This document shows, piece after piece, positions 6,975 through 64,000 of a stretch of DNA of 64,000 nucleotides. The notes below the pieces were generated by a model. It searched no databases. It had not been told where the DNA came from and saw only the letters and a program-made list of their open reading frames with translations. Source of the stretch: Macrostomum lignano (taxonomy: Eukaryota). A program made the position numbers and the translations under genes. The stretch covers positions 372,001 through 436,000 of the forward strand of contig NIVC01000621.1 of assembly GCA_002269645.1 (NCBI GenBank), read 5' to 3'. Every line of letters starts with the position of its first letter. Position 1 is the stretch's first letter.

Positions 6975-9900
6975 ATGTCCGAGGTGTCTCACCTGACAGA
7001 CCAGCTGTCCAAGGCCAGTTGGGCCTACCGCTGGTCCGTCACTGTTCTCTTGTCCTACGTGACAATGAAAGCAGCATTCGACATATTCATACTGAACCTG
7101 GCCACCGCCAACGTGCCATTCCACTGCGCCCAAGCCGTCATCGACAACCAGACCACAGAGTGGGGCAGCGTCAACGTTAGCGAACTCGCTGATACGGCCA
7201 ACTTTTCCATCTTGGACTACAAGTGCTTTGCGCCGCAGTTCGCTCGAGAGGACAACGGTCGACTGGCACCGATACAAGTCATAAATGACTCGTCAGCTAG
7301 CAACAGGCCGTGCACCGCGTGGACTTATTGGCCAACGGAGCCAGGAAGACGGAACATGCTGATGGAATACGATTTCATGTGCGACAGAGCCTACCTGGCT
7401 GACCGGATGCAGACTATCATGCAGGTACGTAGTTGAGGTTAACGCAGAATCCAACAAATTATTTCAGTGTTTTACAAGATACGATCTCAGATTTGATCCG
7501 GTAGACGGTTGCAGAACAGGTATAGATGAGATGAGAACACAGTGATCAGGTTGCACAGCAGGTATAGATGAGATGAGAACACAGTGATCAGGTTGCAGAA
7601 CAGGTAGATGAGATGAGAACACAGTGATCAGGTTGCACAGCAGGTATAGATGAGATGAGAACACAGTGATCAGGTTGCAGAACAGGTAGATGAGATGAGA
7701 ACACAGTGATCAGGTTGCAGAGCAGTTAGATTTCAATGTATACTATTTACTAAAGCAATTTCGAAACCGCCATTCAGGCAGGCATTTTTGTCAGCTGCTG
7801 TTTCGCTCCTCTGGCTGACGCATTCGGCAGAAGGCTGCCATTCATATTGTTCGCGTACATCGACCTGACCAGCACAATTCTGGTTATTTTCGTGCGTGAC
7901 CTCACAGCCCAGATGGTCCTGCGCTTCTTCATGGGCTTCGGCTCTCCCGCTGTGCTCACCGGAGTAGCCTATCTCACCGAGCTGATCTCTGAAGACTATC
8001 ATGGATTGCATGGAAATTTCTACTGGATTCTGTGGGTAGTTGGCTACACGACATCTGGCGTGATTGCCTACCTGGTGATGGAGTGGCGGCTGCAGATGGT
8101 TTTGGTTGCTGCGATTATTGGTTAGTTTTGGAGTTTTCGTGTGCGTCTGTGTCAGGTGTTCTCCAGTGCGTCTGTGTCAGGTGTTCTCTAGTACGTCTGT
8201 GTCAGGTGTTCTCTAGTGCGTCTGTGTCAGGTGTTCTCTAGTGCGTCTGTGTCAGGTGTTCTCTAGTGCGTCTGTGTCGGGTGTTCTCCAGTGCGTCTGT
8301 GTCAGGTGTTCTCTAATGCGTCTGTGTCAGGTGTTCTCTAGTGCATCTTTGTCAGGTGTTCTCTAGTGCGTCTGTGTCAGGTGTTCTCTAGTGCATCTTT
8401 GTCAGGTGTTCTCTAGTGCGTCTGTGTCAGGTGTTCTCCAGTGCGTCTGTGTCAGGTGTTCTCCAGTGCGTCTGTGTCAGGTGTTCTCCAGTGCGGCTGT
8501 GTCAGGTGTTCTCTAGTGCGTCTGTGTCAGGTGTTCTCTAGTGAGTCTGTCGGTGTTCTCTAGTGAGTCTGTGTCAGGTGTTCTCTAGTGAGTCTGTCGG
8601 TGTTCTCTAGTGAGTCTGTGTCAGGTGTTCTCCAGTGCGTCTGTGTCAGGTGTTCTCCAGTGCGTCTGTGTCAGGTGTTCTCTAGTGCATCTTTGTCAGG
8701 TGTTCTCTAGTGCGTCTGTGTCAGGTGTTCTCCAGTGCGTCTGTGTCAGGTGTTCTCCAGTGCGTCTGTGTCAGGTGTTCTCCAGTGCGTCTGTGTCAGG
8801 TGTTCTCCAGTGCGTCTGTGTCAGGTGTTCTCCAGTGCGGCTGTGTCAGGTGTTCTCCAGTGCGTCTGTGTCAGGTGTTCTCCAGTGCGGCTGTGTCAGG
8901 TGTTCTCCAGTGCGTCTGTGTCATGTTCTCGTGTGCGTCTGTCGTGTCAGTTACTTCAGCTGTTCAAAGACAAACAAGCACATCTTACTTGAACCTTCCA
9001 GCCACAGGCTACCTGAGCTATCCCTGGTCCCTGATCGACTCACCAAAGTGGCTGTTCGCCAGCGGTCACCAGTCGGCCGCCAAGGACTCTCTGCTCCGCC
9101 TGTTCCGTCGGCACGGACTCGACACGGCCACAGTCGAGACAATGAAAGTCGACGAAGAATCAACGGAACTGAAGGGCGAATCGGAGACGCTGCAGTCTTC
9201 CCAGGCGAACGCCGAGTTGGATAGCGATTCTAAGAAACGACGTCGCCAACAGCCGAGCAACTTCGAGCTGGTCCGTCGGCAGCTGAGCCGCCTGCTGCCC
9301 AAGGAGAGCCTGTGCCAGAGCAAGTACCTGGCTGTAGAGGCTGCATTCACGGTTCTGTTTGTTGCTAACGCAATGTCATATTTTTCCTCGTCATTCCGCC
9401 GCGACTTCATCACAAAGAATCCGTACTTGAACGTGGTGATCTCTGGAGCGCTGGAGCTTCCGGCCGCATTCCTGGCTTGGTTTCTGACCGACCGCTGCGG
9501 TCGCCGGATTAGCAATATGCTGCTGCTGCTCCCCGCGGGGCTGCTCCTGATCCTCGTGCCGTTCGTGCCGCAACCGCCGGACGTTACCTTCGGTGCGAAG
9601 AGCGCCTGCGCACTGTTGTCTAAGTTCCTCATCACTGTGTCGTTCTGCATAGTGCTCATATTCGGGTCGGAAAGCCTGCCTACGAATATTCGGGCAACTT
9701 CTTTTATCTTGGCGTCGCAGGTTAGTTGAAACTGTTCTGCTGTGGCAGTCTGAGCTTCTCGCTGTAAATATCTCTAGTCCAGTCCCGAATTCTACACGTA
9801 ATCTAGTCCCGATTCTACACGTAATCTAGTCCCGAATTCTACACGTAATCTAGTCCCGATTCTACACGTAATCTAGTCCCGAATTCTACACGTAATCTAG

Positions 9901-32979: not shown

Positions 32980-34224
32980 GTTATTCTGAAGACGATTCTC
33001 ATTGCTGGCAATAATTGTCCTAAGTCTAATGACTCATAGGAAGATTTCATGTTCTGAAATACTTCAGGTAGCTAGAATGTGCTTTGGCGTTGCGAAATTT
33101 AGGTCAAAAAATGCAAACTCTAGCCAGATTAGAAAAAAGTGTATGTCAGTTTTTTTCTGGAGTGCATGAGCACTCAGACACGACCATATAAAGAGTTTAT
33201 GATAGCGCAAAAAATTTATTTAGGAAAGAGTGTTCAAAATTAACTTTAGACAGAAAATTCATACATGTTATTTTGTAAATCGAAAACAGAGTTACCTGCT
33301 AAAAGTAGCCATACATGTGGGTTCCCGTTGCTGAAGAAATTTGCATGGATTGAGAAAAATTGCACGTCGGGACCCTGACCTGATGAGGTTCAACTCAAGG
33401 ACGACTTAAGTAGTCCTTGGTTCAACTCAAGCAGGTATCCGGCTGCGACTACGAGAAATTTTGCTGAGTACAGAGGCCAGTGCGAGATCTACAGAGGTTG
33501 CGTTCAAGGCAAAGGAATTATATATCAAAAAGAGAGAGCATAAAAAATAGTAGATAGTCGATTTCTTTAAAACAAACAAACAGTTTATGCATAAAATCGA
33601 AAACCTTTCGATTTTCGAAAAGTACAAAAGTCGAAATTCAAAAGGAAGGTATTCGTTTGAACACTATGACAAAAACTACTAGTCAAAAAGCCTTGAAAAG
33701 TCGTAAATTATATCCATAAATTAAATTATCTTCAACTTCGAAGTCACCCGAAGTGTAGCGAAAGTTAAAACTCTATATCAAATTCAATCAAAATCATCAT
33801 CCCACATCCGGAAAGTTGATGAAGTGCCGGCGAGGCCAACCAGATTTGCTGAGCACCTGCGTTGTCTTGAGGTTGACTCTGCTGCCGGTCCGATGAAGCG
33901 CGGCCGCTGAACAGCCGACTGCCGCCTGTGATCGGCAGGTAGCCGCCAATCAGGATTCGCTTTCGCTTACCCGACCACCTGCCCAGCATCCTGCTCAACA
34001 AACTCCTGATGCAGCTGTAGTCTCGCTCGATAATCTTGGCCACAGTCAGTGAACAGGACGTAGGTCACGTGGGTGATGAGGAGGTCGATCCGGTTGATCT
34101 CGGGGACGTAGAGTTTTGTGTCCACAATGTTGAGGGACACCAGGAAGGTGGTGTAGAATTCCTTTCCATAGCCAGTTAGTGCGTTAGCATTGTTTGTAGT
34201 CGAGTTTGTTCTGACGGTCATGGG

Positions 34225-37200
34225 CAGTGGCGTCGCCAACGGGGGGGACAGGGGGGACATGTCCCCTCCAGTAAAAGATCTGGGGGGTACATGCCAATGC
34301 TTTGCCCCCCCCCACCCCCACCTTGTGGCCCGTTGTTAAAATCAATAATTTTCGCTGCATGGCGACAAAGTAGCGCCTGCGGCGCTAAAATGAGTGCCTG
34401 CGGCGCTAAAATGAGTGCCTGCGGCGCTAAAATGAGTGCCTGCGGCGCTAAAATGAGTGCCTGCGGCGCTAAAATGAGTGCCTGCGGCGCTAAAATGAGT
34501 GCCTGCGGCGCTAATATGAGTGCCTGCGGCGCTAATATGAGTGCCTGCGGCGCTAATATGAGTGCCTGCGGCGCTAAAATGAGTGCCTGCGGCGCTAAAA
34601 TGAGTCCCTGCGGCGCTAAAATGAGTGCCTGCGGCGCTAAAATGAGTCCCTGCGGCGCTAATATGAGTGCCTGCGGCGCTAAAATGAGTGCCTGCGGCGC
34701 TAAAATGAGTGCCTGCGGCGCTAAAATGAGTCCCTGCGGCGCTAATATGAGTGCCTGCGGCGCTAAAATGAGTGCCTGCGGCGCTAAAATGAGTGCCTGC
34801 GGCGCTAAAATGAGTGCCTGCGGCGCTAAAATGAGTCCCTGCGGCGCTAATATGAGTGCCTGCGGCGCTAATATGAGTGCCTGCGGCGCTAATATGAGTG
34901 CCTGCGGCGCTAATATGAGTGCCTGCGGCGCTAAAATGAGTGCCTGCGGCGCTAATATGAGTGCCTGCGGCGCTAAAATGAGTGCCTGCGGCGCTAAAAT
35001 GAGTGCCTGCGGCGCTAATATGAGTGCCTGCGGCGCTAAAATGAGTGCCTGCGGCGCTAAAATGAGTCCCTGCGGCGCTAATATGAGTGCCTGCGGCGCT
35101 AAAATGAGTGCCTGCGGCGCTAAAATGAGTGCCTGCGGCGCTAAAATGAGTGCCTGCGGCGCTAAAATGAGTCCCTGCGGCGCTAATATGAGTGCCTGCG
35201 GCGCTAAAATGAGTGCCTGCGGCGCTAAAATGAGTGCCTGCGGCGCTAAAATGAGTGCCTGCGGCGCTAATATGAGTGCCTGCGGCGCTAAAATGAGTGC
35301 CTGCGGCGCTAAAATGAGTCCCTGCGGCGCTAATATGAGTGCCTGCGGCGCTAAAATGAGTGCCTGCGGCGCTAATATGAGTGCCTGCGGCGCTAAAATG
35401 AGTGCCTGCGGCGCTAAAATGAGTGCCTGCGGCGCTAAAATGAGTGCCTGCGGCGCTAAAATGAGTGCCTGCGGCGCTAATATGAGTGCCTGCGGCGCTA
35501 AAATGAGTGCCTGCGGCGCTAAAATGAGTGCCTGCGGCGCTAAAATGAGTGCCTGCGGCGCTAATATGAGTGCCTGCGGCGCTAAAATGAGTGCCTGCGG
35601 CGCTAAAATGAGTGCCTGCGGCGCTAAAATGAGTCCCTGCGGCGCTAATATGAGTGCCTGCGGCGCTAAAATGAGTGCCTGCGGCGCTAAAATGAGTGCC
35701 TGCGGCGCTAAAATGAGTGCCTGCGGCGCTAAAATGAGTGCCTGCGGCGCTAATATGAGTGCCTGCGGCGCTAAAATGAGTGCCTGCGGCGCTAAAATGA
35801 GTCCCTGCGGCGCTAAAATGAGTGCCTGCGGCGCTAAAATGAGTCCCTGCGGCGCTAATATGAGTGCCTGCGGCGCTAAAATGAGTCCCTGCGGCGCTAA
35901 TATGAGTGCCTGCGGCGCTAAAATGAGTGCCTGCGGCGCTAAAATGAGTGCCTGCGGCGCTAAAATGAGTGCCTGCGGCGCTAAAATGAGTGCCTGCGGC
36001 GCTAAAATGAGTGCCTGCGGCGCTAATATGAGTGCCTGCGGCGCTAAAATGAGTGCCTGCGGCGCTAAAATGAGTGCCTGCGGCGCTAAAATGAGTCCCT
36101 GCGGCGCTAATATGAGTGCCTGCGGCGCTAAAATGAGTGCCTGCGGCGCTAATATGAGTGCCTGCGGCGCTAAAATGAGTGCCTGCGGCGCTAAAATGAG
36201 TGCCTGCGGCGCTAATATGAGTGCCTGCGGCGCTAAAATGAGTGCCTGCGGCGCTAAAATGAGTGCCTGCGGCGCTAAAATGAGTCCCTGCGGCGTTAAT
36301 ATGAGTGCCTGCGGCGCTAAAATGAGTGCCTGCGGCGCTAAAATGAGTGCCTGCGGCGCTAAAATGAGTGCCTGCGGCGCTAATATGAGTGTCTGCGGCG
36401 CTAAAATGAGTGCCTGCGGCTCCAAAATGAGTGCCTGCGGCGCTAAAATGAGTGCCTGCGGCGCTAAAATGAGTGCCTGTGGCGCTAAAATGAGTGCCTG
36501 CGGCGCTAAAATGAGTGCCTGCGGCGCTAAAATGAGTGCCTGCGGCTCCAAAATGAGTGCCTGCGGCGCTAAAATGAGTGCCTGCGGCGCTAAAATGAGT
36601 GCCTGCGGCGCTAAAATGAGTGCCTGCGGCGCTAAAATGAGTGCCTGCGGCGCTAAAATGAGTGCCTGTATCGCTAAAAAGAGTTCTGTAGTGTACGTAC
36701 GTACAGTATGATACGCCCGGGCAGTCTGATTGGCTGCGGAGTGGGGTGGGTGCCGCCACCCCAATTCTAACTCCAAAATATATAGACGCGTGCCCAGCGC
36801 GGCGAGATTGTAAGAGTTTGGGTACACAGCAAACACGGCCTCTGACTCAGTTATTACAAGTGCCCGTGGCGCTAAAATGAGTCCCTGCGGCGCTAATATG
36901 AGTGCCTGCGGCGCTAAAATGAGTGCCTGCGGCGCTAAAATGAGTGCCTGCGGCGCTAAAATGAGTGCCTGCGGCGCTAAAATGAGTGCCTGCGGCGCTA
37001 AAATGAGTCCCTGCGGCGCTAATATGAGTGCCTGCGGCGCTAAAATGAGTGCCTGCGGCGCTAAAATGAGTGCCTGCGGCGCTAAAATGAGTCCCTGCGG
37101 CGCTAATATGAGTGCCTGCGGCGCTAAAATGAGTGCCTGCGGCGCTAATATGAGTGCCTGCGGCGCTAAAATGAGTGCCTGCGGCGCTAAAATGAGTGCC

Positions 37201-40200
37201 TGCGGCGCTAATATGAGTGCCTGCGGCGCTAAAATGAGTGCCTGCGGCGCTAAAATGAGTGCCTGCGGCGCTAATATGAGTGCCTGCGGCGCTAAAATGA
37301 GTGCCTGCGGCGCTGATATGAGTGCCTGCGGCGCTAAAATGAGTGCCTGCGGCGCTAAAATGAGTGCCTGCGGCGCTAAAATGAGTGCCTGCGGCGCTAA
37401 AATGAGTCCCTGCGGCGTTAATATGAGTGCCTGCGGCGCTAATATGAGTGCCTGCGGCGCTAAAATGAGTGCCTGCGGCGCTAAAATGAGTGCCTGCGGC
37501 GCTAATATGAGTGTCTGCGGCGCTAAAATGAGTGCCTGCGGCTCCAAAATGAGTGCCTGCGGCGCTAAAATGAGTGCCTGCGGCGCTAAAATGAGTGCCT
37601 GCGGCGCTAAAATGAGTGCCTGCGGCTCCAAAATGAGTGCCTGCGGCGCTAAAATGAGTGCCTGCGGCGCTAAAATGAGTCCCTGCGGCGCTAATATGAG
37701 TGCCTGCGGCGCTAAAATGAGTGCCTGCGGCGCTAAAATGAGTGCCTGCGGCGCTAAAATGAGTGCCTGCGGCGCTAATATGAGTGCCTGCGGCGCTAAA
37801 ATGAGTGCCTGCGGCGCTAAAATGAGTCCCTGCGGCGCTAATATGAGTGCCTGCGGCGCTAAAATGAGTGCCTGCGGCGCTAATATGAGTGCCTGCGGCG
37901 CTAAAATGAGTGCCTGCGGCTCCAAAATGAGTGCCTGCGGCGCTAAAATGAGTGCCTGCGGCGCTAAAATGAGTGCCTGCGGCGCTAATATGAGTGCCTG
38001 CGGCGCTAAAATGAGTGCCTGCGGCGCTAAAATGAGTGCCTGCGGCGCTAAAATGAGTGCCTGCGGCGCTAATATGAGTGCCTGCGGCGCTAAAATGAGT
38101 GCCTGCGGCGCTAAAATGAGTGCCTGCGGCGCTAAAATGAGTCCCTGCGGCGCTAATATGAGTGCCTGCGGCGCTAAAATGAGTGCCTGCGGCGCTAAAA
38201 TGAGTGCCTGCGGCGCTGAAATGAGTGCCTGCGGCGCTAAAATGAGTGCCTGCGGCGCTAATATGAGTGCCTGCGGCGCTAAAATGAGTGCCTGCGGCGC
38301 TAAAATGAGTCCCTGCGGCGCTAAAATGAGTGCCTGCGGCGCTAAAATGAGTCCCTGCGGCGCTAATATGAGTGCCTGCGGCGCTAAAATGAGTCCCTGC
38401 GGCGCTAATATGAGTGCCTGCGGCGCTAAAATGAGTGCCTGCGGCGCTAAAATGAGTGCCTGCGGCGCTAAAATGAGTGCCTGCGGCGCTAAAATGAGTG
38501 CCTGCGGCGCTAAAATGAGTGCCTGCGGCGCTAAAATGAGTGCCTGCGGCGCTAATATGAGTGCCTGCGGCGCTAAAATGAGTGCCTGCGGCGCTAAAAT
38601 GAGTCCCTGCGGCGCTAATATGAGTGCCTGCGGCGCTAAAATGAGTGCCTGCGGCGCTAATATGAGTGCCTGCGGCGCTAAAATGAGTGCCTGCGGCGCT
38701 AAAATGAGTGCCTGCGGCGCTAATATGAGTGCCTGCGGCGCTAAAATGAGTGCCTGCGGCGCTAAAATGAGTGCCTGCGGCGCTAAAATGAGTCCCTGCG
38801 GCGTTAATATGAGTGCCTGCGGCGCTAAAATGAGTGCCTGCGGCGCTAAAATGAGTGCCTGCGGCGCTAAAATGAGTGCCTGCGGCGCTAATATGAGTGT
38901 CTGCGGCGCTAAAATGAGTGCCTGCGGCTCCAAAATGAGTGCCTGCGGCGCTAAAATGAGTGCCTGCGGCGCTAAAATGAGTGCCTGTGGCGCTAAAATG
39001 AGTGCCTGCGGCGCTAAAATGAGTGCCTGCGGCGCTAAAATGAGTGCCTGCGGCTCCAAAATGAGTGCCTGCGGCGCTAAAATGAGTGCCTGCGGCGCTA
39101 AAATGAGTGCCTGCGGCGCTAAAATGAGTGCCTGCGGCGCTAAAATGAGTGCCTGCGGCGCTAAAATGAGTGCCTGTATCGCTAAAAAGAGTTCTGTAGT
39201 GTACGTACGTACAGTATGATACGCCCGGGCAGTCTGATTGGCTGCGGAGTGGGGTGGGTGCCGCCACCCCAATTCTAACTCCAAAATATATAGACGCGTG
39301 CCCAGCGCGGCGAGATTGTAAGAGTTTGGGTACACAGCAAACACGGCCTCTGACTCAGTTATTACAAGTGCCCGTGGCGCTAAAATGAGTCCCTGCGGCG
39401 CTAATATGAGTGCCTGCGGCGCTAAAATGAGTGCCTGCGGCGCTAAAATGAGTGCCTGCGGCGCTAAAATGAGTGCCTGCGGCGCTAAAATGAGTGCCTG
39501 CGGCGCTAAAATGAGTCCCTGCGGCGCTAATATGAGTGCCTGCGGCGCTAAAATGAGTGCCTGCGGCGCTAAAATGAGTGCCTGCGGCGCTAAAATGAGT
39601 CCCTGCGGCGCTAATATGAGTGCCTGCGGCGCTAAAATGAGTGCCTGCGGCGCTAATATGAGTGCCTGCGGCGCTAAAATGAGTGCCTGCGGCGCTAAAA
39701 TGAGTGCCTGCGGCGCTAATATGAGTGCCTGCGGCGCTAAAATGAGTGCCTGCGGCGCTAAAATGAGTGCCTGCGGCGCTAATATGAGTGCCTGCGGCGC
39801 TAAAATGAGTGCCTGCGGCGCTGATATGAGTGCCTGCGGCGCTAAAATGAGTGCCTGCGGCGCTAAAATGAGTGCCTGCGGCGCTAAAATGAGTGCCTGC
39901 GGCGCTAAAATGAGTCCCTGCGGCGTTAATATGAGTGCCTGCGGCGCTAAAATGAGTGCCTGCGGCGCTAATATGAGTGCCTGCGGCGCTAAAATGAGTG
40001 CCTGCGGCGCTAATATGAGTGTCTGCGGCGCTAAAATGAGTGCCTGCGGCTCCAAAATGAGTGCCTGCGGCGCTAAAATGAGTGCCTGCGGCGCTAAAAT
40101 GAGTGCCTGTGGCGCTAAAATGAGTGCCTGCGGCTCCAAAATGAGTGCCTGCGGCGCTAAAATGAGTGCCTGCGGCGCTAAAATGAGTGCCTGCGGCGCT

Positions 40201-40618
40201 AAAATGAGTGCCTGCGGCGCTAAAATGAGTGCCTGCGGCGCTAAAATGAGTGCCTGTATCGCTAAAAAGAGTTCTGTAGTGTACGTACGTACAGTATGAT
40301 ACGCCCGGGCAGTCTGATTGGCTGCGGAGTGGGGTGGGTGCCGCCACCCCAATTCTAACTCCAAAATATATAGACGCGTGCCCAGCGCGGCGAGATTGTA
40401 AGAGTTTGGGTACACAGCAAACACGGCCTCTGACTCAGTTATTACAAGTGCCCGTGGCGCTAAAATGAGTGCCTGCGGCGCTAAAATGGGTGCTGACAAC
40501 ACCGATTCTGAAAATAAAGTACCTGTAGGAATTTCCTCGTGCACATGTACTTGTACTTGTACATGTACATGTTCTTGGCTTTGTCCCCCCCACCATAAAA
40601 TCCATGGCGACGCGCCTG
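34225..40618 (+). mobile_element. hAT-type non-autonomous transposon expanded to 6.4 kb by an internal satellite
   Basis: TIRs CAGTGGCGTCGCCA...TGGCGACGCGCCTG and an 8-bp TSD GTCATGGG (34217-34224) / GTCATGAG (40619-40626). Removing the element plus one TSD restores the channel reading frame. Confidence 0.88.
34372..40487. repeat. 21-bp satellite with three identical ~200-bp spacers
   Basis: (GAGTGCCTGCGGCGCTAA(A/T)AT)n, with spacers at ~36668-36867, 39176-39375 and 40256-40455 (offsets 2508 and 1080 bp). Confidence 0.97.
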
Positions 40619-44630: not shown

Positions 44631-46094
44631 ACGTGATGGATATGCATGAGGTGCTGATCCAGATAATTAATTGAACGGGGGAGCGCATAGACTACTATAG
44701 CTATAGTCTATAGCCACACTAAAGGTATATGCATATGATATCATGTATCATGTATACGTACATGATAGTGTGTATTACTCACTCATAGATAAAATAAAAA
44801 AGCAAACTCGACGGGGGCAGCGTCCCCCCTAAGTTCCGCCACCGCGAATTGATGAAGTAGTGTAAGTTATACTTAATTCACTACATACGAGCGTACAATT
44901 AAATTGGGAACATGCTAAAGATCTTGGATTACTAAAATATGTCCTTTTTCTTCGCATTTCTTGTTTTCGTAAAATTAAGAGATGTGTTGTTTCTTCCTAT
45001 TGTCATCAGTAGCGTATTGTTTCCTGCTTTGCTAAGGTAAGATTTAAACAATATACTCAACTTTTACTAACAAAGTATTGCTATTCATTAGAAATGCGTT
45101 TCTTATTATTAGTCCTTGTAAAATAGAAACATAAGCCTTTTATTAATAAAGCAAAATCTTTTATTTATCAATTGCCACGGAATCTTACTGGTAAATATTT
45201 AAAGTAGATTCCATCCAGTAACACGGTACTAAAATATAAACACATTATTTCATTTGTGAATCGCATACTCAGTTACGACTTAACTGCATACAAAATTAAT
45301 ACTTTTACACTTTAAGTGTTCTCGCTGATCACTTGTAATGTAATCCAAGAGTGCTGAGAGCATGATTTAATAAATGTTCTAGCATTTTAAAAGATTTCGT
45401 ACGCAGATATATTTTTTCACTATTTTTTTACTAATAAAACTAGTTTAAACATACAGATTTATATTAAGTGCATTTTTATCTTGTTTTTAGCTTATTAGTA
45501 TTCATACATTAGCAGTCGATTTTCTTCATTAGATGTTTATTTAAGATTCAGCACTAGAATTTGAAACAAACAAATACACTTAGTAGGAAATTCCTTAAAG
45601 TACAGGGATACTTGTAATCATTTTAAAATTACAAATAGTCAACAAAAATTCTATTAGGTTAATCTTGAATGACCTGAAAACCGAATGTCAATCTCTATAA
45701 ATATAGCATAGTTTTTAGTACTTTTTGGAGATGCAAATGCTAAAACATTTTTCTTGCGTTTCCTTTAGGGACAACTTAAGTAGTAGCTAGGGGTATGGTA
45801 TAATATCTCTTATTTTTTTCGAAAATCATTTTAGTGAATAATATATAGCTACACTATAAAGAAGGAAGTTTGCATTTTAGACACAATGGAACTCTTGGAA
45901 CTTCATATTTACTTTCTACACTACATTAAAAATATAAAATGACACGAGTAGTCTCCAAAAAATCTTCACACTATTCTAGTGTGAAGTCTAGTCAGAAATA
46001 AATAGTCTAGTCAGAAACGAGATACTTTTCCTTGATTTCTGTCCCCAGCTCACACAACACTGAGACACAAGAAACGCAGTAAAGAACAACCGCG

Positions 46095-49000
46095 ATGGCC
46101 GAGGCGTTCCCTGCTCCAGCAGAGCCCGAGCCACCTCAGCCTGCTGATGAAGAGACATTTCAGCGAGCTTTTCAAAACTCGGACTGGAAGAAGATGGTGG
46201 AGCTGCTTAGAGCGTCTGTCGCTACAAACAACTCAGATCTTGCCCACAGGTTCTGCATGAAAGCTGTGGCAATTGCAGCTGGTAAAAAAAGTTGGCAGTC
46301 GGTGATTGAACTGATTTCAGCCGCTCCTGACGCTCGCACCATGAATGCTTGCTGCGCTCTGGTGGTCGCTGCGGCAGCCAAGGACCGTCAGGCAGATGTG
46401 GTGCGTCAACTGCTTGACCTGACTGACTTCAGAGCCAGAGACCAGTTTGCCTTGGTGTCCTTGCTGTCAGCTCAGTTCCAGGAGGACAAAGTAACTGAGC
46501 TGCTGGAGGCCGCTGAGACTTGTGCTGCCCGAGATGCAATTTGCGCCCTGGCTGCTCGACTTGCAGCGAAAAGTGCAAACTGGCAAGCCGTGGTTCAATT
46601 TTGTAAATTGATTGAATCAACCAGTGTCAGAGACAAGTGCTGCATCGATATTGTGAGTACAGTGGCTCACAATCAACAGTGGAATTTGGTGTATGAAATT
46701 CTTGACATTGTCTCACCTGGATCTGCTACAGACCAGTGCTGTTTAGAAGCAGTGAAGCCGTCTGCAGATAACAGGAACTGGAAGTTGGTGATGAAACTGA
46801 TAGAAATGGCTTCTGAAAATGAAATTGAATTCAAGGACCAGTGCTGCGTTGATGCGATGAATCGAGAACAGTCCAAAACTGTGACAGTCCGTGACAAATG
46901 CTGCAATGATGCAGTTCAGTCTGCAGCTTCTCATAAACAGTGGAAAATGGCAATCGAAGTAATTCCCATTATCTCTCAAGTCGCTCTGAGAGTTCACTGC
47001 TGTGCTCATTTGATGAAGCCACTAGCTGATAGTCAAGAATGGAACCTCGTTCTCGATCTGGTTAAACTTTCCAAAGAAATATCTGAAAGTGACGAGTGCT
47101 GGATTACTGCATTGGAACTGGCATCGTTCGGCAAGCAATCAGAAACAGTGAGACAGCTCCTTCAGATGCAAGGCACAGAGAAGGTCAGAGAAGATTTCAT
47201 TCTGAAGCTACTCGATTCAGAAAAGTATGAAGCGGTGCTGTTTTTGTTGGAGTTCTTCGCTGAAAATCTCGAAGAAGTAGAAAATTTTATCGCCGATCGT
47301 GAGAAGTCTGATTTCAAACAGCTCGATAAAAAATGGAAGTGGCTCATTGTGGGCATCGAAAGAATACCAGATACGCGTAAAAGGCACTATTTGCAGAAGC
47401 TGCTCGATCTGTCAATCGACCAAAAGGAGTGGCGTGCCGTCTGCCTGATTGCAAGCCTCTTTAACCAGGTCACTGAAAGGAAGCCCATCGAAGGTCTTCG
47501 TGCAGACAGTGATGGCTCTTTCAAACAGGCTATAATTGCGGTGCTTTCAATTATCGATGAACAAACAAAGTCGCATTGTTGTGTAGCTCTATTCGTTTAT
47601 TCGTTGGAATTCAATGACTTTACTCGTAACTATTGGCCGTACTACGAGTATGATTCAGATACAAATTTATTAGCCAGCGCTGAAGCCAACGAAGAACTCG
47701 AAGATGCTCTCGTTTCAATGCTTGCTCGTCAGCAAAGTAATCGGGATATCTACAACCGGATTTCTCGTTGTTTCTACTATTACGTGCACTGCAACCGATA
47801 TGAAAATGAAAAACTAGTTAAAGTTTTTGCCAAAGTGGCTGTAAAACTGAGAGACTTTAGGATGATTCAAGTGCTGATTCATTTGTGCTCCATTTGGTGC
47901 TGCCGAATGGTTTTTTGTGAATCTACATGTAGATGCGACATGTGCAAAATAAAAGACAGTCAAGGAAGTCACTGTGACGATAGATGGTATTCGAATTTTT
48001 GGAGGAACATTTGGTTCTGGGATGACAGTCAAAGAAGTCACTGTAACCATAGATGGTGTTCGAATTTTTGGAGCGACATTTGGTTCTGGGATGACAGTCA
48101 AAGAAGTCACCGGCGTGAAGAGTGGCGTAAAATTAAATGTTCATGCAACTGTAGCAATTGTAGGAAACTGAACGAGAAGCTCAATGCTTTCATCGACTCT
48201 TATCCGTTTGGTTCTCAGGATTTGAACGAAATTTACAGATGGCTGGACAGACAAAATTATAAAAATTATCTAAAGAATTGTCTCCTAGAAAATATAAAAT
48301 CAGCTCTCATGGATACAGAGCAGAAGACACACAAAGAAACTGCTGAGCCCGAAGTGGAACAAGTGGAACCAGCAGGACCCATCAAAACTACAGTATTGCA
48401 TCGCATGCTTCAAGAGTTACAAAATCTTACAACTGCAACCGAATCTCAGAGGCAGAGTTGGTGGAAAGAAATGCTCGGATTAGCAAATTCAACTCAAGGA
48501 GCGGAACTGTTTTGCGATCAACAAGAAGTCGAAACATTTTGCACCAGCCTCAAACGTCATTTAAAATCTCGCCCAGACTGGCTGCGGGATGAAGCAGTAT
48601 TCAAGCGAATCGCGGAGCTCAATATTTTATCAGGAGATTTATCCAATATAAATAAACTAGTGAGCTGTGTTAATGCAGCTGATCCCCAACTGGCTACGGA
48701 TGTCATTGTCGGAGCCGTTGAGTTCGCATCAAAGCATCAAAAGTGGAGCTTGATGGAGCACCTGATTGCTTCCGCGCCCAACCAATATGCAAAGATTCAG
48801 AGCTACCTGAAGGCTTTCAAATTCGGCTGGAGAACGACTGACAAAATTCTTGACTGTGCAGCCACCAGCTGCAAATTCGTTGGCGGTGTCTGCAACGATG
48901 AAGACAGGAAGCGAATCGTGCAGCATCTGATCAGGGGGAAGCAGTGGGAAGAGTTGAGCGAATGCTGCTGCGATGACTTTCGAACATTTCCTGAAGCTGA

Positions 49001-52000
49001 TGAGCACGAAAATGTTTCCAGTTTGTTCATCAAAGTGTCCGAGTTTCCACTTGAAAACTGTCATCCCACAAGAGCTACTTTGAGTCGATTGGCTTGGCCT
49101 CATGCTGTTCGGATCAAGGACTGGGAGCTCATCGAGCAACTGGCTCGGGAGCTGCCTGACCCAGAGAGCGATACAATATGCATTAAGCTCCTCCCAGCCG
49201 AAGTGAAGAATTGCCAAACAAAGACGTCGCTCATACTGATAAGGCTCATTAGGGACTCACTGCAGAAAAGCAAATGCTGCTCAAAAGCTGCGTGCCTCTT
49301 TGGAAAGTGTGGTCCGCTAGACCTGCTATTGAGTCTGCTAGATTTAGTCAATGAGCGACATGCTAGGATTCTGAAACAGTGCCATCACAAGGCATTTGTT
49401 GGAGCTCTCAAAGGTAGAAACAAAGAAATCGTGTGCTACATTGTGAAGTCTAAATTCAAGCCGGACTTCACTGACCCTGACATCCTGCATTATTTGGCGA
49501 ACGAGGCTCTTCACGGCGACTTTGAGCTCATCGAATTCATATTTGGTGAGTTGAGCTGTGTTGAAGAATTGCAAGAGCCCCAAGGAATATCTGATGTTGA
49601 TCTCAGAAAAGAATGTGCAGAGATAATCGCTGCCGTGCTTTACAAAAGCATGTCAGAAGGATTTGTGTCCCTTGCTAGTGCGGTAATCAAATACGCAAAC
49701 ATAAGCTACCTGTACAAAGGCGGACTTACCTGTCTGATGGTGGCAGCGCTGGCCGGACATCACGAGCTGGTGAAACAAATTCTCGGCTCACCGGACACCG
49801 ACATCGATGCGGTGGATGAAACTGGCCAATCAGCTCTGGCCAAGGCGTGCGTCAGAGGCCACCTGAGAGTCGCGATGACTTTGTTGGATTCAGGGGCAAA
49901 TTTGAAGCTTACAGATCATAGAGGACGCGACTGCCTCCATCTGGCACGGCTTTACAGGCATAGAGACCTCCTGAGACTGCTTCAATACCGACTTAAGTTT
50001 AAAAGCACATCAGAACAGCCGTAAGTATTTTGACCTAACGCTTTCTTAGTGCCATCAGCAGTAGGAATATCAATCCATTTTTAATGAGGCTCTCTTTTCA
50101 ATGAGGCGTCAATTTTTGTTGCTAGGCCTGGATATAGCGGAGAAAGGCAAAACAATTGAAAGTTTTTATTTTTTGCACTTTACAGCCAGTTTCAAGTTGA
50201 AAGCATTCAAGACCATCGAGGGATCCAATTAGGGTTCCTTTCCAAAAAAGGTTGTCTATTAAACTTTTTTCTGTCTTTAATCCACAGCCACGTCTTTTCT
50301 TTCATAGTACCAAAGTATCAAAGCAATATAGTCGTGATGAACTCTACAGAATTACGTTTCAAACTTTGTTCCGTTTCTTTACAGTTTGTGAGTGAGGTTT
50401 ATCATTATCTTTACCTTGTCTTAGTCATGTTGAAGTGTTCTTCGGTGTCTTTCCTTATGCTACGATTACTGTTGATGTTTCACGATTACGCTCATGGGAT
50501 TAGTTTACGCTGAGCTCATTGATGAGTCCGTTCTCTGAGCATGCCTGTATTGAATACCTCTCGCGCAGTTCTTCCTTCAACTGTTGCCCCTCTACAGCGA
50601 AATCATCCAGAGTCCCGGAAACCATATGCGCGGTGAAAGTCTGAGCAGAATTCTCAGCAGCGCAGGCTTCACTCGCGAGCGGGCCGAGCAGCAGCAGAGA
50701 ATGGCTGACTTTTTGGAGACGCTGGCTCGCATCATCACCAAAGACGGTAGGTGCATGACTGGCAGCTACGCAGACGGATGGGGCAACAGTCTGAAGCAGG
50801 TGAACGGACTGACCGCTGCCGACTCCGACATTGACTGGACAGTAATCGTTGGCTCACAAGACAAAGATGAAGACAAAATTAGGAAGCTGGTGTTTCATCT
50901 TGAGAGCTGTTGCAGATGTGGTGACGTTCAAGACCGCCCACGCATCATTGATGGTCACGCACAGATGCAGTCCCCTGGAGGTGAGTAGCTAATAAACTAA
51001 TAATATAAGAAACTGGGTTCGCAAACCGCTCCGGAATTCCTGTTCCAGGAAGCCAGCCGGCGGTGGCAGCGGACGCTTGCGGAGTTCGACCTGCCGAAGA
51101 CACATGCCATGCGTACCAGTGCTGCGGCAGTCTCACTCACCCGAACAGAGTTGAGAAACTGCTTCCAGCAGGTGCCTTAGCGATGAAGGTGCACCTGGTG
51201 ACTGCTACCAGACCTAACTCAGACAACGAGATGAGAGTGAGTTTCAGCTTTCATGAGAAGAAGATCATGAGAGACCTGAGCGAGACCCAGGGTCAGCTAT
51301 TCGTGCTCATCAAGTTCATCTTTAAGAGGCTTTTACCAAGATATTATAATCTGTCCGGGCTTAAGACTTACCATGCTAGAACTTTGATGTTCTTCATTCT
51401 GCATACTTTTCCTAGCGACAGTTGGAGTCGGGAGAACCTCAGAAGCCTGCTAGCAAAGGCTTTAAACACGATGCTTGAACTGATGGAAGAAAAAGGCTGT
51501 ACTGACATTTGTATGCCGCACTTCTTCATTCCTGGCGCATTTTTATGCGTCAAAAATGCTGGAATCGGCGGCCCCTTTTTGAAATCAAAAGTTGAAATCC
51601 TTGAAAAACTGATTGAGATTAAGGACAACATCGAGATTGTAGAACGGCACCTTCTCGAGACCGTGAGTCCGTTGGAATCTGACGTTTTCCACTTCCACCC
51701 GTTCGCCCTGCTGCCTCTGACAGTGCCTCCAGATGAGGAGGAAGTTCAGCAAGACAAGTTCGCTCACATCTACTGCATCGTGTTCGAAATTCTCGGTGAG
51801 CTGCGCTCTGAAATTTGGGACAAAGAAGCCTTGCTGAGTCAAGCAGAGCGATTGCCAGACTGCTGTATGATGGCCAAGCTGTGTCTCATGGCCATGGCTC
51901 ACTTGAAATCCAACGATGAGAGCACAGCCAAACAGCTTCTGCAGCGACACTCTCAGCTCAAGGTTCTCAGATCTCTGTCGCCTGAAAATGTGCGCCACCT

Positions 52001-52622
52001 TGACGAAATCACATCGGACTGGCTGTGGCGGTTCTGCTTCATTCACCACAACCTGCCGGAGATGGAGTTTCTGCCCGAGTTCTCCAGATCCCTGATCTGC
52101 GTCAAGAGACCGGAGCGAGGACCGACCCACCTGTACGTGAACTTCCGCTGCCTCTGGTGGAGTCTCGGAGCTGAGCTTCTTGCCGACTCCAGGAAGTCAC
52201 AAACTGACAGCTGGTTCCAGGAGCTTCAGGACAGTCCGGGCAGCGAGGATTTTGAGGAGCTGCGCACACTGACTGAGTTCAGCGACAGTCAGCACCACGT
52301 GAATTTCTGTCTGGAGAGAGCCAGGAAACTTAAGGACGAAAAGCGATTGCAGACAACAGACGATGTACATTTTACACAGATGATGCAGAGGCAGAGCAGC
52401 CCACACTTACGAGTCGAAACGCATCAAAAAATGTCGATTTTCGACCAGATTGTCTGGATTCTGCTGGCTGTTTCAGTCTGGTTTTATTTTTATTTTTATC
52501 TCGATACAATTCGAAAGTTCGTATCGCCCGTGGTGAATTTTCCGCACCACCCCATGGACACGCTGGTGCAGCTTTGGCATCTCGCCGATGAATTCCGTTT
52601 TCTGAGGTTTGCAAGAATTTAA
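46095..52622 (+). CDS. Ankyrin/helical-repeat + cGAS-like (Mab-21/cGLR) nucleotidyltransferase + C-terminal TM protein, 1960 aa; exons 46095-50020, 50598-50980, 51049-52622
   Basis: Donor CC|GTAAGT 50021, acceptor CTACAG| 50597, donor G|GTGAGT 50981 and acceptor TTCCAG| 51048 are phase-consistent (5883 nt). NTase motifs: TGSYADG (50758-), DSDID (50821-50835), EDTCHA (D at 51099). Mab-21 motifs: HLV..EMRVSFSFHEK, LIKFIFK, LKTYHARTLMF, W..ENL, MPHFFIPG. Canonical ANKs at ~49720-50000. Confidence 0.9.
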
Positions 52623-58952: not shown

Positions 58953-60108
58953 TCAGAAAGAGTGGTTTCCTAAGAAAAACTGGATCTGTCGATCGAGCAC
59001 CTCACGCCAGTTCGGGATCAAGCGAGGGGTGTGCTCAACCCTACAGACATTCTCGTTGGTCCCACGAGGGCTCGCGCAGGAGAGCCGGTTGGCAAACCTG
59101 ACTTGCTTCGGTCTCGCAACTCGTACCGATTCTGAGAGGATCACCTGCCGAGGGAACCCCCAACGATCCGGTGGCGCCACAGCCTCTCTAGGCCTCAAAC
59201 GCTGACCAGGGTTCACTAGGTCTGGTTGGCGATCCGGCGCCGCTTCGTCCGGCGACGGTGAGCGCTGAACTTCCACCGGCGCTGGCACTTCGGGTTCTTG
59301 ATGCGCTCCATCCAGAGCGACCGGTGCCTCGACCTGCCGGTCTCGAGGAGGTTGAAAGACCCAGCGTCTTGGAACTAAAATATGTTCCTCCTCTTCGTCC
59401 TCTGACTCCGATTGGCAAGGGTGCCCTGCCGACGCTGGTGCGGGCCTTGTAGGCGGCCGCCCTCTCTCATTTCTAATTATCCCGGGCCTCTCTTCTTCTA
59501 CCGGCCTGGGTTGAAAACCTGAAGGAGCCGGGCGCAGAGTGTCCCTATGAGTTCGGAAGGTCTCCCTTCGTCCCGGGAGTGGGCACACTGGCGAGATGTC
59601 ATAGACCACAGGGGCCGGCTTCCCGACTATCCTCCAAGGCCCGGTATGTGTCTTGTGGAATTTGGGGATCTCCCAGTCTTCGATGACGGGATTCGCGAGG
59701 AAAACGATGTCACCGACCTCGAGATCTCGACACTTGTTGGGCCGCCTGGCTTGCGACTGCACTCTGCTCTTAGCTAGGTCTTCGAGATTTCGTCTGGCTT
59801 CCTGCAGACTCGACAGGAGTTGACTAGCATAGGCGTCATGACCTGGAGCTGGAGGAGCCGGTCCGACCGCGACGTCTAACGGAAGCCGTGCTTCTTGACC
59901 GTAGACTAGGAAGAACGGCGAGTACCCGGAGGTCCTTGTTACGCTCGACCGCATTGCCATTAGGCAGGAAGGCAGTTCCTCATCCCAATCCTTGTGATCC
60001 TTTTCCAGCAAGGTCGTGAGCAAAATTTTCAGCGTTCGATGCTGGACTTCAGCCATTCCGTTGCCTTGTGGGTGATAAGGAGTCGTTCGAGTCTTCCTGA
60101 TTCCCATC
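58953..60108 (-). pseudogene. Gypsy integrase, C-terminal half (element A), 5'-truncated by insertion of element B
   Basis: GIRKTRTTPYHPQGNGMAE, WDEELP..LMAMR, TGYSPFFLVYGQEARLPLD and the GPY/F motif HTGPWRIV. The first track residues (MLSVSIQTNTHGLSEFL) are LTR-B sequence. Confidence 0.9.
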
Positions 60109-60326
60109 TGTAGGAACTCTGACAAGCCGTGTGTGTTTGTTTGGATCGATACCGACAGCAAAGTCCCAAATACGAGTAAATGCCAATGCGTGTATTTAAA
60201 TATTAGTCAATGGGGGGTTGGCGCGTGCATGGTTAGAGAGTTGAATGTACGCCGATATAGAATGACAGAGAGATAGAAAGAGGCTAGTAAATACGACACT
60301 GAGAACTGCTAAGGCGCAAGCCTACA
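60109..60326 (-). mobile_element. 3' LTR (218 bp) of Gypsy element B with adjacent PPT (60327-60340)
   Basis: Perfect 6-bp inverted termini TGTAGG...CCTACA. The minus strand reads TAGGGGGGAAGAAT|TGTAGG. Confidence 0.88.
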
Positions 60327-60471
60327 ATTCTTCCCCCCTAAGGAAAAAGTGATGAGGAATAAAAAAAACAGCTGACGGAAATAAAAAATATTGTTATTGT
60401 CAGTAAATCAGTTGACGGGAAAAAAATAATATTGTTGTTGTCAGTTCAGTTAGTGATTCAAACAGCGTTTG

Positions 60472-63400
60472 TCATTTATAAATTTTCGGCCCCTCTTTAG
60501 CCTCACGTGGATGCCTCCTGAAGGCTAGGAAGTCCCTCTGGCCGGCGGGCTGGCCGGCAGACACAGGCTGGCCGGCCGAGGCAGGTTGGCCGGCAGACAC
60601 AGGCTGGCCGGCAGACACAGGCTGGCCGGCCGAGGCAGGTTGGCTGGCTGAGGCAGGTTGGCCGGCTGAGGCAGGTTGGCCGGCTGAGGCAGGTTGGCCG
60701 GCTGAGGCAGGCTGGCCGGCTGAGGCAGGCTGGCCGGCAGAGGCAGGCTGGCCGGCAGAGGCAGGCTGGCCGGCTGAGGCAGGCTGGCCGGCTGAGGCAG
60801 GTTGGCCGGCTGAGGCAGGTTGGCCGGCAGAGGCAGGTTGGCTGATAGGTCGCAGATGCGTTACATGGCGCATGCAGGACTGTCGCCCTCGCTCTAAGAT
60901 GCAGGTGTCTCCTCGAACTTCCTTTACCGTCCATGGCAGAGGCTCGAAAGGCAGTTGCAGTTTGTTTCGCGTCTGTTGTTTGCGGAGCACTTGGTTGCCG
61001 GGTTGGATGCTGTGATCCTTCACTGCGTTGCGCGTGTCAAATTGCTGCTTCATGCTGTCGGCATACTTGCGATTCCAGGCTCTAACAGTGTCGTGGACCT
61101 CACCGGCTGTTGGAACGAACGGTTTGCTAGTCGGGATTCCGTCGTTGATTTTTCTGCCCATTAGAAGCTCTGTAGGAGTGCGTCCGGTAGCCCTGTGTGG
61201 TGTCGTGCGGAAAGCCAGCAGCCAGTCTTCGATGGCTTCTCTCCAATTGCGACCTTCAGAAACTGCGGTTTTCACTGCTTTGCCGATGCTTCGATTGAGG
61301 CGCTCGGTGGCCCCATTGGACTCCGGATGCAGCGGGCAGATGAGGCGATGATGGACTCCGAAGTCGGCTAGAAAGCTTCGAAAATCGGCCGAACTGAAAG
61401 GAGGCCCATTGTCTGTCACGACTTCGACTGGAACGCCGTGCCTGCTGAAAAGTCTCCTCAGATGCGGTTTTACACTCTCTGCTGTTGTCGAGCTCAAAAT
61501 GTTGATCTCCGGGTATTTAGAATACAGGTCCGTGGTAACTAGAAGCATTTGGCCTTGGACAGGTCCGAAGAAGTCCATTCCAAGTTGCTGCCAGGGACCC
61601 TCGGGTAACTTTGTCGGTCTCAGAGGTGTCTGATTGGTAAGAGTGTCCGACGCTTGACAAGGAATGCAGCATTTCACGAAGGCACCACAGTCACTGCGCA
61701 TCCCTGGCCACCAGACTTTGGTCTGCAGACGCTTGAGTGTTCGATCGGCACCAAGATGTCCGGTGTGGGCCAGTTGCAAAATTGGTCTCCGTAGTGACTC
61801 TGGGACGACAATGAGGTCTCCTCGAAGTAGCATTCCATTGTCTTCTGTCAGTTCGCTGCTGATGGCTTTTAGTGCGCGTTGTACCGAGTCGTGTGTGTTC
61901 CAGTTTCCTGTCTTGATGGCGCTCAGCGCGGCTTGAATTCCTGCGTCTGTCTTTGCTGCGTCTCGGATTTGTTCCGCACTGAAACCTTTTGGCACGGCTC
62001 CTGTTGATACAGCGTTGACGTATGCGGTGTCGAAGACCTCTCCCCAGTTTTTCCTGAGCTCTGGAAGCGGTTGGCGGCTTAGTAGATCAGCTGGGTTGGA
62101 CGGCCCTGGTCTGTACACCAAGTTGAAGCGGAGGTGTTGAATTCGAAGAACCATGCGTTCAATCCGTGGTGGCGGGCGGGATCCCGGTCTGAAGAGTGGC
62201 AGGAGCGGTCGGTGGTCGGTCACCACTGTAAAACTTGGATCACCAGCCAGGTAGTTTTCGAACTTCAAGCAGCCAAATTTGATAGCCAGCGCCTCCCGCT
62301 CAATCTGGGCGTACCGCTGCTAAACTTGTGACAGCGCTCTGCTGGCGTAAGCCACTGGTCTGCAGATTCCGTCCGGCTGCTTTTGTGTCAGAATCGCACC
62401 AAGTCCGATTGGCGATGCGTCAACTATAAGCTCTGTTTGGTGTTTGCGGTCGAAAAAGGCAAGAGTTTCTGCCTTACTGATGATCGATTTGATCTCTTCG
62501 AAGGCTTTTGAGTGGCTGGCAGTCCACTCGAATGTCTCCCCTTTCTTTGTTAATCTGCGCAGCGGTGCGGAGACATCAGCGAAGTTAGGTATGAATTTTG
62601 CCAGAAAGTTTGCTGTGCCTAGGAACGAGCGAACTTCGGATACGTTGGTCGGCTGTCTGAAGTGCTTCATAGCTTCGATCTTCTCATTAGCAGGCTGCAC
62701 TCCCTTTGCAGATAGGCGCATTCCCAAGAACTCGACAGCGGGGACGGCGAATTTGCACTTTTCTTTATTTAGCGTAATTCCGAATTCTTCGAGACGCTGC
62801 AGACAGGCTTCGAGTCTTTTGCAGTGCTCTTGCAGGTCCGAAGCGTATACGATGACGTCGTTGTGGACCCAACGAACACCATCGATTCCGCTAAGCACGC
62901 CGAGCATGACTCTTTGTAGGATTTCGGATGCATTCGTAAAGCCCATGCTCAGTCTTTTGAGGCGCATTAGTCCGAGCGGCGTGCTAAATGTGAAAAGGTG
63001 CCGGCTGTTCTCGTGCACTGGGATCTGGTAAAAGGCTTTACGAATATCTAGCTCGCTGAACAGCTTGGCTCCGGACATCTCCTCGGTGACCTCGTCCAAT
63101 GTCGGTATTTGTTGTTTTTCAGGGATGACATAGGCGTTTAGGTTGCGCAGGTTCTGGCAGATTCGGACTCCGCCATCGTCCTTTGGAACTACTACCATGC
63201 GGGCCACCCACGCGCAGGGTCCTTTTACTGGCTCGATGATATCTTGCCTTTCTAAGTCTTTCAGCTCCTTGATAACAGATTCTCGGAGATGCGCTGCAAC
63301 TCGGGCTGGCGGATGACACGCCGGGGCCGCGTTGTCCGACAGCTGAACTTCGACCTGCACGCCTTTGATGCATCCAATTCCGTCAAATACTTTTTTGTGC

Positions 63401-64000
63401 TGATGCAAGATGTCCTGAATATTCTGGCTTTCATACCCCTCGGCTGCCTTGACGTTGGAGTTGACATCTTCTGTCTGGCTGAGAATTGGCCGCTGGATAT
63501 GCAGGATTCCTAGCTCAAAGGCAGCTTGGCGTCCGAGTATCGTTAGACCGTCGCCGTCGAGAACGTGGAAAGGCACAGTTGCGCTAGCGGTACCTATTTT
63601 GATGCCTAAGCTCGCAGTACCGATGATTTTGAGAGGTTCGGGCGTTCCATATGCATGAACTTTTACCTTGGTGGTTCGAATTCGCTGATCATCCAGCTGT
63701 CGAAATGTTTTGATGCTCATGATACTGCAGCTGGCTCCGCTGTCCACCATCACCGGTAGCTTACAGTCTCCGATTTCGACAGTTAACGAGACGTCTGCTG
63801 GGTAGCTGCTGTCTTTGCACAAGCCAAAAACGTCTTCGCCGATGCTAGCATCGAAGTTTGGCTCCGGTGAGGTGCTCACTAGGTTAGCGCTGACTTGCGA
63901 TCGAATCGTGTTGTTACTCCAGCGTGCTTTGCGGCATGCTTTGGCTAGGTGATTGGTTTTTCCGCAGTTGAGGCAGATTTTTCCTCTCGCCAAGTCGCAT
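60472..64000 (-). pseudogene. Gypsy (Mag-like) gag-pol of element B: CCHC knuckle, protease, RT, RNase H, integrase; premature TAG at 62322-62320
   Basis: CLNCGKTNHLAKAC, VDSGAS, DIRKAFYQI, RT motif WVHND (D->N), VDASPIGLGA..YASRAL, HTGH..CIPC, GMDF, TDNGPPF, ESNGATE. ..ALSQV*QRYAQIE.. joins the two track ORFs in the same frame. Confidence 0.92.
60543..60846 (-). repeat. 18-bp in-frame repeat (ASAGQP)n in the tail of the element B integrase
   Basis: About 16 copies of GGCAGG(T/C)TGGCCGGC(T/A)GA. Confidence 0.9.

Follow-up and report, generated by a model that had tools for sequence, protein, structure and literature searches.

Three open reading frames (ORFs) on the plus strand of a 64,000-nucleotide stretch of the Macrostomum lignano genome (GCA_002269645.1, contig NIVC01000621.1, positions 372,001 to 436,000; hereafter the window) raise the question of whether they encode one protein and, if so, what that protein might do. 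The ORFs lie at 46095-50024, 50584-50988, and 51063-52622 of the window, and an earlier note on this DNA had proposed that they are spliced in phase into a single 1960-amino-acid (aa) protein, a long repeat scaffold followed by a nucleotidyltransferase (NTase) domain of the type found in cGAS-like receptors (cGLRs). We find that they do form an intact three-exon gene with a 1960-aa product, laid out as a helical solenoid, three ankyrin repeats, a cGLR/Mab-21 NTase, and a C-terminal extension ending in a hydrophobic helix. The gene is a new member of a large, already catalogued M. lignano family of ankyrin-fused cGLRs (ANK-cGLRs), and not a new kind of gene.

The three exons (Table 1) join into 5883 nucleotides (nt), a number divisible by three, and the spliced frame runs for 1960 codons with its sole stop at the end. 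An in-frame TAA at 46080-46082 lies 15 nt 5' of the ATG, and both introns are of the GT-AG type and keep the phase, the acceptor end of intron 1 being pyrimidine-rich (CTCTACAG, at 50597). Deposited proteins that cross the junctions show that the frames are not joined by chance. A 491-aa M. lignano entry (UniRef100_A0A1I8HGV1, P0122) is identical to aa 1100-1590 of the product and covers both junctions, and two proteins from a second, ~90% identical locus (L001, contig NIVC01000890.1), where the same three exons stand in the same order, also read through: PAA46602.1 (P0121) through both junctions and PAA75335.1 (P0001) through the first. Over junction 1 all three share EQP-EI(I/L)QSPGN, and over junction 2 P0122 and P0121 share QSP(G/A)G-SQPAVAA, the hyphen marking the splice. 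GenBank's annotation of this assembly goes back to transcripts assembled from RNA-seq (PMC5730564), and the ankyrin repeats and NTase are continuous in more than 30 paralog models. A tblastn search within the window found no second family member.

Modelling of aa 1310-1960 with AlphaFold2 (AF2), for which 37 paralogs were supplied, reached a predicted local distance difference test (pLDDT) score of 74.8 and a predicted template-modelling (pTM) score of 0.77. When this model was compared with the PDB using Foldseek, the first match was human cGAS (E 2.7e-6, target TM score 0.5-0.57), followed by MB21D2, MAB21L1, Sp-cGLR1, and then bacterial CdnE; ranks 1-39 were all cGAS, MB21D2, MAB21L1, or Sp-cGLR1, 38 of them with E<=1e-3. 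The fold comparison that the earlier note had suggested thus places cGAS and cGLR structures first. Sequence searches gave the same neighbours: the Pfam Mab-21_C model (PF20266) scored 27.3 bits, over its gathering cutoff of 24.1, phmmer against PDB sequences matched only cGAS, MB21D2, and Sp-cGLR1, and a trimmed family profile matched Sp-cGLR1 at E 2.4e-8 and cGAS at E 2.7e-6. On this evidence the C-terminal part has the bilobed cGAS/Mab-21 NTase fold, in agreement with the proposed Pol-beta-like NTase/Mab-21 domain and its C-lobe motifs.

The residues expected of an active enzyme can be followed through two alignments, one of the 37 paralogs and a trimmed one of 11 sequences that includes three divergent M. 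lignano proteins from Li et al. The motifs to which attention had been drawn, TGSYADG, DSDID, and EDTCHA, are all present, and the three catalytic positions proposed in them are the conserved ones; for the third acid the site was right but the residue needs refining, since it is the D (D1454) and not the E. In the AF2 model (strand numbers follow model numbering), the GS motif comes after strand 51-54, the D-x-D stands at the start of strand 78-84, and D1454 is within strand 144-152, so that G1364/S1365, D1386/D1388, and D1454 are on or beside the three strands expected of a Pol-beta-type site. A profile-to-PDB alignment against mouse cGAS and Sp-cGLR1 placed the RVSFSFHE segment opposite WRLSFSHxEK of cGAS, and the family's KTYHAK opposite SYHVKT; the Y of KTYHA(K/R), in the C-lobe core, is invariant among the 37 paralogs. 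Judged from these alignments, the set of catalytic and nucleotide-binding residues is complete and conserved across the paralogs. An N-lobe insert (50860-51130, aa ~1397-1464) also separates the strand of the DxD from that of the third acid, and its His and Cys residues are conserved family-wide (FHL..C.C, GH, and CC after the catalytic D). Its position differs from that of the zinc thumb of vertebrate cGAS, and it could be a metal-binding module.

Compared with known metazoan cGLRs, the protein combines shared machinery with considerable divergence. Human cGAS, Drosophila cGLR1, Sp-cGLR1 (8GJY, Stylophora), and human MB21D2 (7LT1) have the same bilobed Mab-21/cGAS fold, and metazoan cGLRs share the GS, D-x-D, and D set together with the RxSFSxxE and Y nucleotide-contact motifs. 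However, identity to metazoan cGLRs is only 14-19%, the window protein has the large Cys/His-rich insert, its NTase is near-neutral whereas theirs are basic, and it adds a C-terminal extension of ~300 aa and an N-terminal arm of ~1300 aa.

Much closer relatives exist within M. lignano itself. With a cutoff of E<=1e-3, an exhaustive HMMER search returned 269 clusters (50% identity), and with the stricter one of E<=1e-10 it returned 96. All ten of the close clusters that we looked up consist of M. lignano Ank/Mab-21 proteins of 1171-3379 aa, paralogs of 2111, 2381, and 3379 aa being already in the databases. More distant relatives, which match in the C-lobe only, are cGAS/MB21D2-like proteins of mussel (a mollusc), sea anemone (a cnidarian), and barnacle. 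Our literature search found no paper on a Macrostomum cGLR expansion as such. Li et al. 2023 (PMC9980059), however, list ANK-cGLR and TPR-cGLR fusions among their architecture classes, include M. lignano PAA accessions in their ANK domain table, and treat the M. lignano relatives as predicted cGLRs and ANK fusions. The novelty implied for a repeat-fused cGLR is therefore overstated. Apart from Mab21-like proteins, according to the same work, 'most platyhelminthes' are without a cGLR, and five NTase domains of M. lignano (#89-93) were cloned there for a 140-enzyme screen with double-stranded DNA (dsDNA) and poly I:C (PMC9980059). In the parts of its supplement that were covered, PAA46602 and PAA75335 do not appear, which does not establish their absence from the whole.

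Paralogs such as PAA68676.1 (BOX15_Mlig016402g1, #93) and PAA93208.1 (#92; both in Li et al. Table S3) have the same order of parts, with helical Cys-Cys repeats, ankyrin repeats, NTase, and C-terminal extension, and are 42-47% identical over 84-90% of the C-terminal 651 aa; the cloned PAA68676.1 (P0131) is 45% identical to the window protein. Their active-site motifs TGSYAxGW, DSDIDW, RPAxDTCHA, RVSFSF, and KTYHAK are identical. By contrast, in the window protein 10 extra aa follow the DxD strand, and ~830 aa of its arm (aa ~360-1190) and the hydrophobic helix are limited to this gene and its second copy. We also observed that one cluster (P0233, 50% identity) includes M. lignano proteins of ~1400 aa named SPRY domain-containing; further recognition modules may be fused to the same NTase family.

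What precedes the NTase is a helical repeat arm, as had been described, but ankyrin accounts for just ~100 of its ~1300 aa and the other ~1200 aa form a non-ankyrin solenoid. The Ank_2 match lies at aa 1214-1297, and Ank, Ank_3, and Ank_4 also score over their cutoffs; outside aa 1202-1297 there is no Pfam Ank match at E<=1, and the N-terminal arm has no Pfam domain, just weak sub-threshold TPR-like matches. In an AF2 model of aa 1-1200 the chain is all-helical (pLDDT 60, pTM 0.33), and in its two well-predicted stretches, aa ~18-360 and ~990-1200 (pLDDT 70-87), helices of ~17 residues alternate with helices of ~10, linked through short loops, at a period of ~33. The CC motifs of the N-terminal solenoid occur at aa 86, 182, 215, 250, 269, and 302. 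These repeats align to those of another paralog (P0133; BLASTP 2e-12), which identifies the Cys-Cys repeat as one common to other family members and distinct from ankyrin. The ANK- and TPR-fused cGLRs of corals and other invertebrates (Li et al. Fig. 1C/S2A) likewise place an N-terminal repeat module before the NTase; in comparison, the ankyrin part of the window protein is short, and most of its arm consists of the family-specific 33-residue Cys-Cys repeat and an orphan helical region with no Pfam model. Foldseek searches with the arm returned generic TPR, HEAT, and clathrin-type solenoids at a TM score of ~0.1, values that, with the pTM of 0.33, support 'alpha-solenoid' alone, and we did not name the arm's family from them. 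When all 1960 aa served as the query, the ankyrin repeats drew in so many vertebrate ANKRD17/ANKHD1 matches that PAA75335.1 was the sole informative result.

At the other end of the protein, the hydrophobic helix (QIVWILLAVSVWFYFYFYL) lies ~40 residues before the C-terminus. It is kept in PAA46602.1 and missing from the other paralogs read. This segment, aa 1903-1921, may be a membrane anchor.

How might these parts work together? With moderate confidence, we interpret the whole as a ligand-gated maker of a nucleotide signal. The enzyme would be held inactive until a ligand binds; using D1386, D1388, and D1454 to hold two Mg2+ ions, it would then join nucleoside triphosphates into a cyclic or 2'-5'/3'-5'-linked nucleotide signal, to be read by a downstream receptor. 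The solenoid-ankyrin arm would most likely supply recognition of the ligand or of a partner, or else control location. The earlier note's proposal, an active immune pattern-recognition enzyme whose specificity is set by the repeat arm, is thus a reasonable hypothesis of function. As far as can be judged from sequence, the ligand is less likely to be dsDNA or double-stranded RNA (dsRNA) than a protein or some other molecule that is not a nucleic acid. A nucleic-acid ligand is made less likely by the isoelectric point (pI) of the NTase domain, which is 6.65 compared with values >8.5 in cGLRs that sense dsDNA or dsRNA (Li et al. 2023, PMC9980059), and by the position of the M. lignano enzymes outside the 15 found active in the dsDNA/poly I:C screen. 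Taken together, the pI and the outcome of the screen lead us to conjecture that the arm or another partner is the likelier recognition element.

Several observations weigh against this interpretation. The NTase N-lobe is divergent, with AF2 confidence of 40-70, and is recognisable solely through the fold search and the motifs; the Pfam model for the Mab-21 N-terminal NTase has no match to it at E<=1. None of the 15 active enzymes in the screen comes from a flatworm, the five cloned M. lignano domains included (PMC9980059), a result that could mean either that the right ligand was missing or that activity is lacking. Both cGAS and STING are reported to have been lost in Schistosoma and Schmidtea. 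With regard to the arm, a search with the N-terminal 1204 aa matched solely the second copy of the same gene, the middle third is poorly predicted by AF2, and a sensor role is a conjecture. Finally, the ratio of nonsynonymous to synonymous substitution rates (dN/dS) between the window gene and the second locus is 0.58 overall (Nei-Gojobori), which indicates weak constraint only; it approaches 1 (local ~1.1) solely near the Cys/Trp-rich tandem repeat, a region that is 117 nt (39 aa) shorter in the second locus.

Some of these observations would also fit a competent NTase-fold enzyme with a product other than a cyclic dinucleotide immune signal and a role unrelated to pathogen sensing, such as the synthesis of linear 2'-5' oligonucleotides, as by OAS, or the nucleotidylation of RNA or protein. 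The catalytic triad occurs throughout the Pol-beta NTase superfamily, enzymes of the Cid1 and poly(A)-polymerase type do appear further down the Foldseek list, the relatives fall outside the active set of the cyclic-nucleotide screen, and STING is missing from other flatworms. However, the nearest structures and sequences are cGAS, cGLRs, and MB21D2, not OAS or terminal transferases, and OAS is absent both from the top 50 fold matches and from the PDB sequence matches. The cGAS-type RxSFSxxE and Y motifs are retained, and the many divergent paralogs with repeat arms represent an expansion typical of immune receptor families. We therefore regard such an enzyme as unlikely.

We think it less probable again that the protein is not an enzyme but a Mab-21-type scaffold, or an adaptor that binds nucleotides, similar to MAB21L1 or MiD51, with an arm that would serve protein interactions. 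MAB21L1 and MB21D2 are indeed among the fold matches, no relative has a known activity, and the N-lobe, with its large Cys/His-rich insert, is poorly predicted. Against this, the GS, the DxD, and the third D show little or no variation over dozens of paralogs down to ~30% identity, which would not be expected once catalysis had been lost, whereas Mab21L1/2/3 are described as lacking a predicted functional active site (Li et al., PMC9980059). On this evidence we consider a scaffold quite improbable.

The second copy bears on whether the gene is read as we propose. It corresponds to BOX15_Mlig015886g1/g2 (PAA46602.1, PAA75335.1) of the same assembly, a colinear three-exon locus that is 92-96% identical to the window in exon nucleotides and 80-93% identical in protein. 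Exons are conserved well over intron 1 and the flanks (Table 1), which, together with the overall dN/dS of 0.58, counts in favour of the gene model. Its deposited models are truncated (792 and 1083 aa) by the contig end and by indels, and among the copies read only that in the window gives the complete 1960-aa reading. PAA46602.1 is short because its gene begins 364 nt from the end of the contig, an effect of assembly. The second locus carries frameshifting indels of 1 bp and 4 bp (L001 9850 and 13600 region), and we considered whether they mark a pseudogene. We rejected this as the principal explanation, as another contig (L002), 99.4% identical to the first, has different indels (L002 283) and reads through exon 2. 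Because such nearly identical contigs differ in their indels, the frameshifts are most likely assembly errors and not signs of decay. We consider it very improbable that the annotation is an artefact, covering either two separate genes or a pseudogene in decay that yields no 1960-aa product. In favour of an artefact, the model at this exact locus is drawn from genomic sequence, the other copy is frameshifted and its models truncated, M. lignano transcripts can be polycistronic precursors (PMC5730564), and dN/dS is 0.58. Against it, the frame is open for 1960 codons over canonical junctions, deposited proteins span these junctions, exons exceed intron 1 in conservation, and the domain continuity recurs across the paralogs.

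Returning to the ligand-gated interpretation, the M. lignano ANK-cGLRs might together make up a diversified set of receptors, each with a variable arm that would bind a non-nucleic-acid ligand directly and so activate its NTase, in the manner of the leucine-rich repeat arms of NLRs. In the present member the arm is unusually long and orphan, and the protein may be anchored in a membrane by its C-terminal helix. The system would run even though the other flatworms studied have lost cGAS-STING, possibly by way of a non-STING receptor. We offer this possibility tentatively and think it rather doubtful. The gene provides a full-length model where the deposited models of its other copy are truncated, and it shows that some M. 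lignano ANK-cGLRs have arms of >1300 aa and a possible membrane anchor. Its unusual features are the orphan helical region of ~830 aa, the candidate anchor, and the Cys/His-rich N-lobe insert. As a laboratory model with RNA interference and transgenesis, M. lignano is workable for the study of possible non-nucleic-acid activation of cGLRs, and the family could reveal a reader of the signal in a phylum whose other members are without cGAS and STING.

Table 1. Features of the ANK-cGLR gene, with positions in the window and nucleotide identity between the window and the second locus (L001)
Feature	Position	Strand	Content or evidence	Identity to second locus
Exon 1	46095..50020	+	ATG to splice donor; aa 1-1308 and 2 bases of codon 1309	92%
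N-terminal alpha-solenoid, aa ~18-360	46146..47174	+	About ten 33-residue helical hairpins, several with Cys-Cys	
69-bp (23-aa) tandem repeat	47955..48110	+	2.3 copies, Cys/Trp-rich; Tandem Repeats Finder; AF2 pLDDT <50	
Second well-predicted helical-hairpin stretch, aa ~990-1200	49062..49694	+	AF2 pLDDT 70-87; regularly paired helices; runs into ankyrin repeats	
Canonical ankyrin, about three repeats, aa 1202-1297	49698..49985	+	Ank_2 E 4e-16, Ank E 6.5e-11, Ank_4 E 3e-10	
Intron 1 (577 nt)	50021..50597	+	GTAAGT...CTCTACAG	73%
Exon 2	50598..50980	+	aa 1309-1437: linker helices and start of NTase N-lobe (family alignment)	92%
GS motif, G1364/S1365	50761..50766	+	At least 90% kept in 37-paralog alignment, invariant in 11-sequence alignment	
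Predicted catalytic D-x-D, D1386-I1387-D1388	50827..50835	+	At least 90% kept in 37-paralog alignment, invariant in 11-sequence alignment	
Intron 2 (68 nt)	50981..51048	+	GTGAGT...TTCCAG	94%
Exon 3	51049..52622	+	Remaining NTase N-lobe, Mab-21 C-lobe, family-specific C-terminal extension, tail, stop	96%
Predicted third catalytic acid, D1454	51099..51101	+	In RPAxDxxxA..CC; at least 90% in 37-paralog alignment, invariant in 11-sequence alignment	
R-V-S-F-S-F-H-E, R1499/S1501/S1503/E1506	51234..51257	+	Counterpart of cGAS WRLSFSHxEK; nearly invariant in family	
Mab-21 C-lobe core, HhH/H2TH-like, aa 1533-1599	51336..51536	+	PF20266; phmmer and profile matches to cGAS, Sp-cGLR1	
C-terminal hydrophobic helix, aa 1903-1921	52446..52502	+	QIVWILLAVSVWFYFYFYL; top Kyte-Doolittle 19-residue window in protein, 1.75	
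3' flank				62%

Elsewhere in the window, a 2108-aa ORF on the minus strand at 34218-40544 could be taken for a neighbouring giant gene; we rejected it as spurious, since it is a 21-bp satellite array. The satellite (GCCTGCGGCGCTAAAATGAGT) occupies 34375-40272 in ~280 copies with 90% matches and a higher-order interruption about each 2.5 kb, and it also yields long ORFs in several further frames. More than 15 unrelated minisatellite arrays, with periods of 15-47 bp and each up to 2.7 kb in length, are spread over 7500-33000, where they produce strong local swings in GC skew. A plus-strand ORF at 8710-9729 matches sugar and major facilitator superfamily transporter models (Sugar_tr E 7.6e-8) and probably represents a single exon of such a transporter gene; upstream of it, a 25-bp minisatellite (8141-8942) reads as a Cys/Val-rich repeat. 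On the minus strand, 58953-63993 contains the pol of a long terminal repeat retrotransposon, with protease, RVT_1, RNase H, Integrase_H2C2, and rve, which continues past the end of the window, and after its integrase an 18-bp repeat (60544-60842) encodes a QPASAG run.

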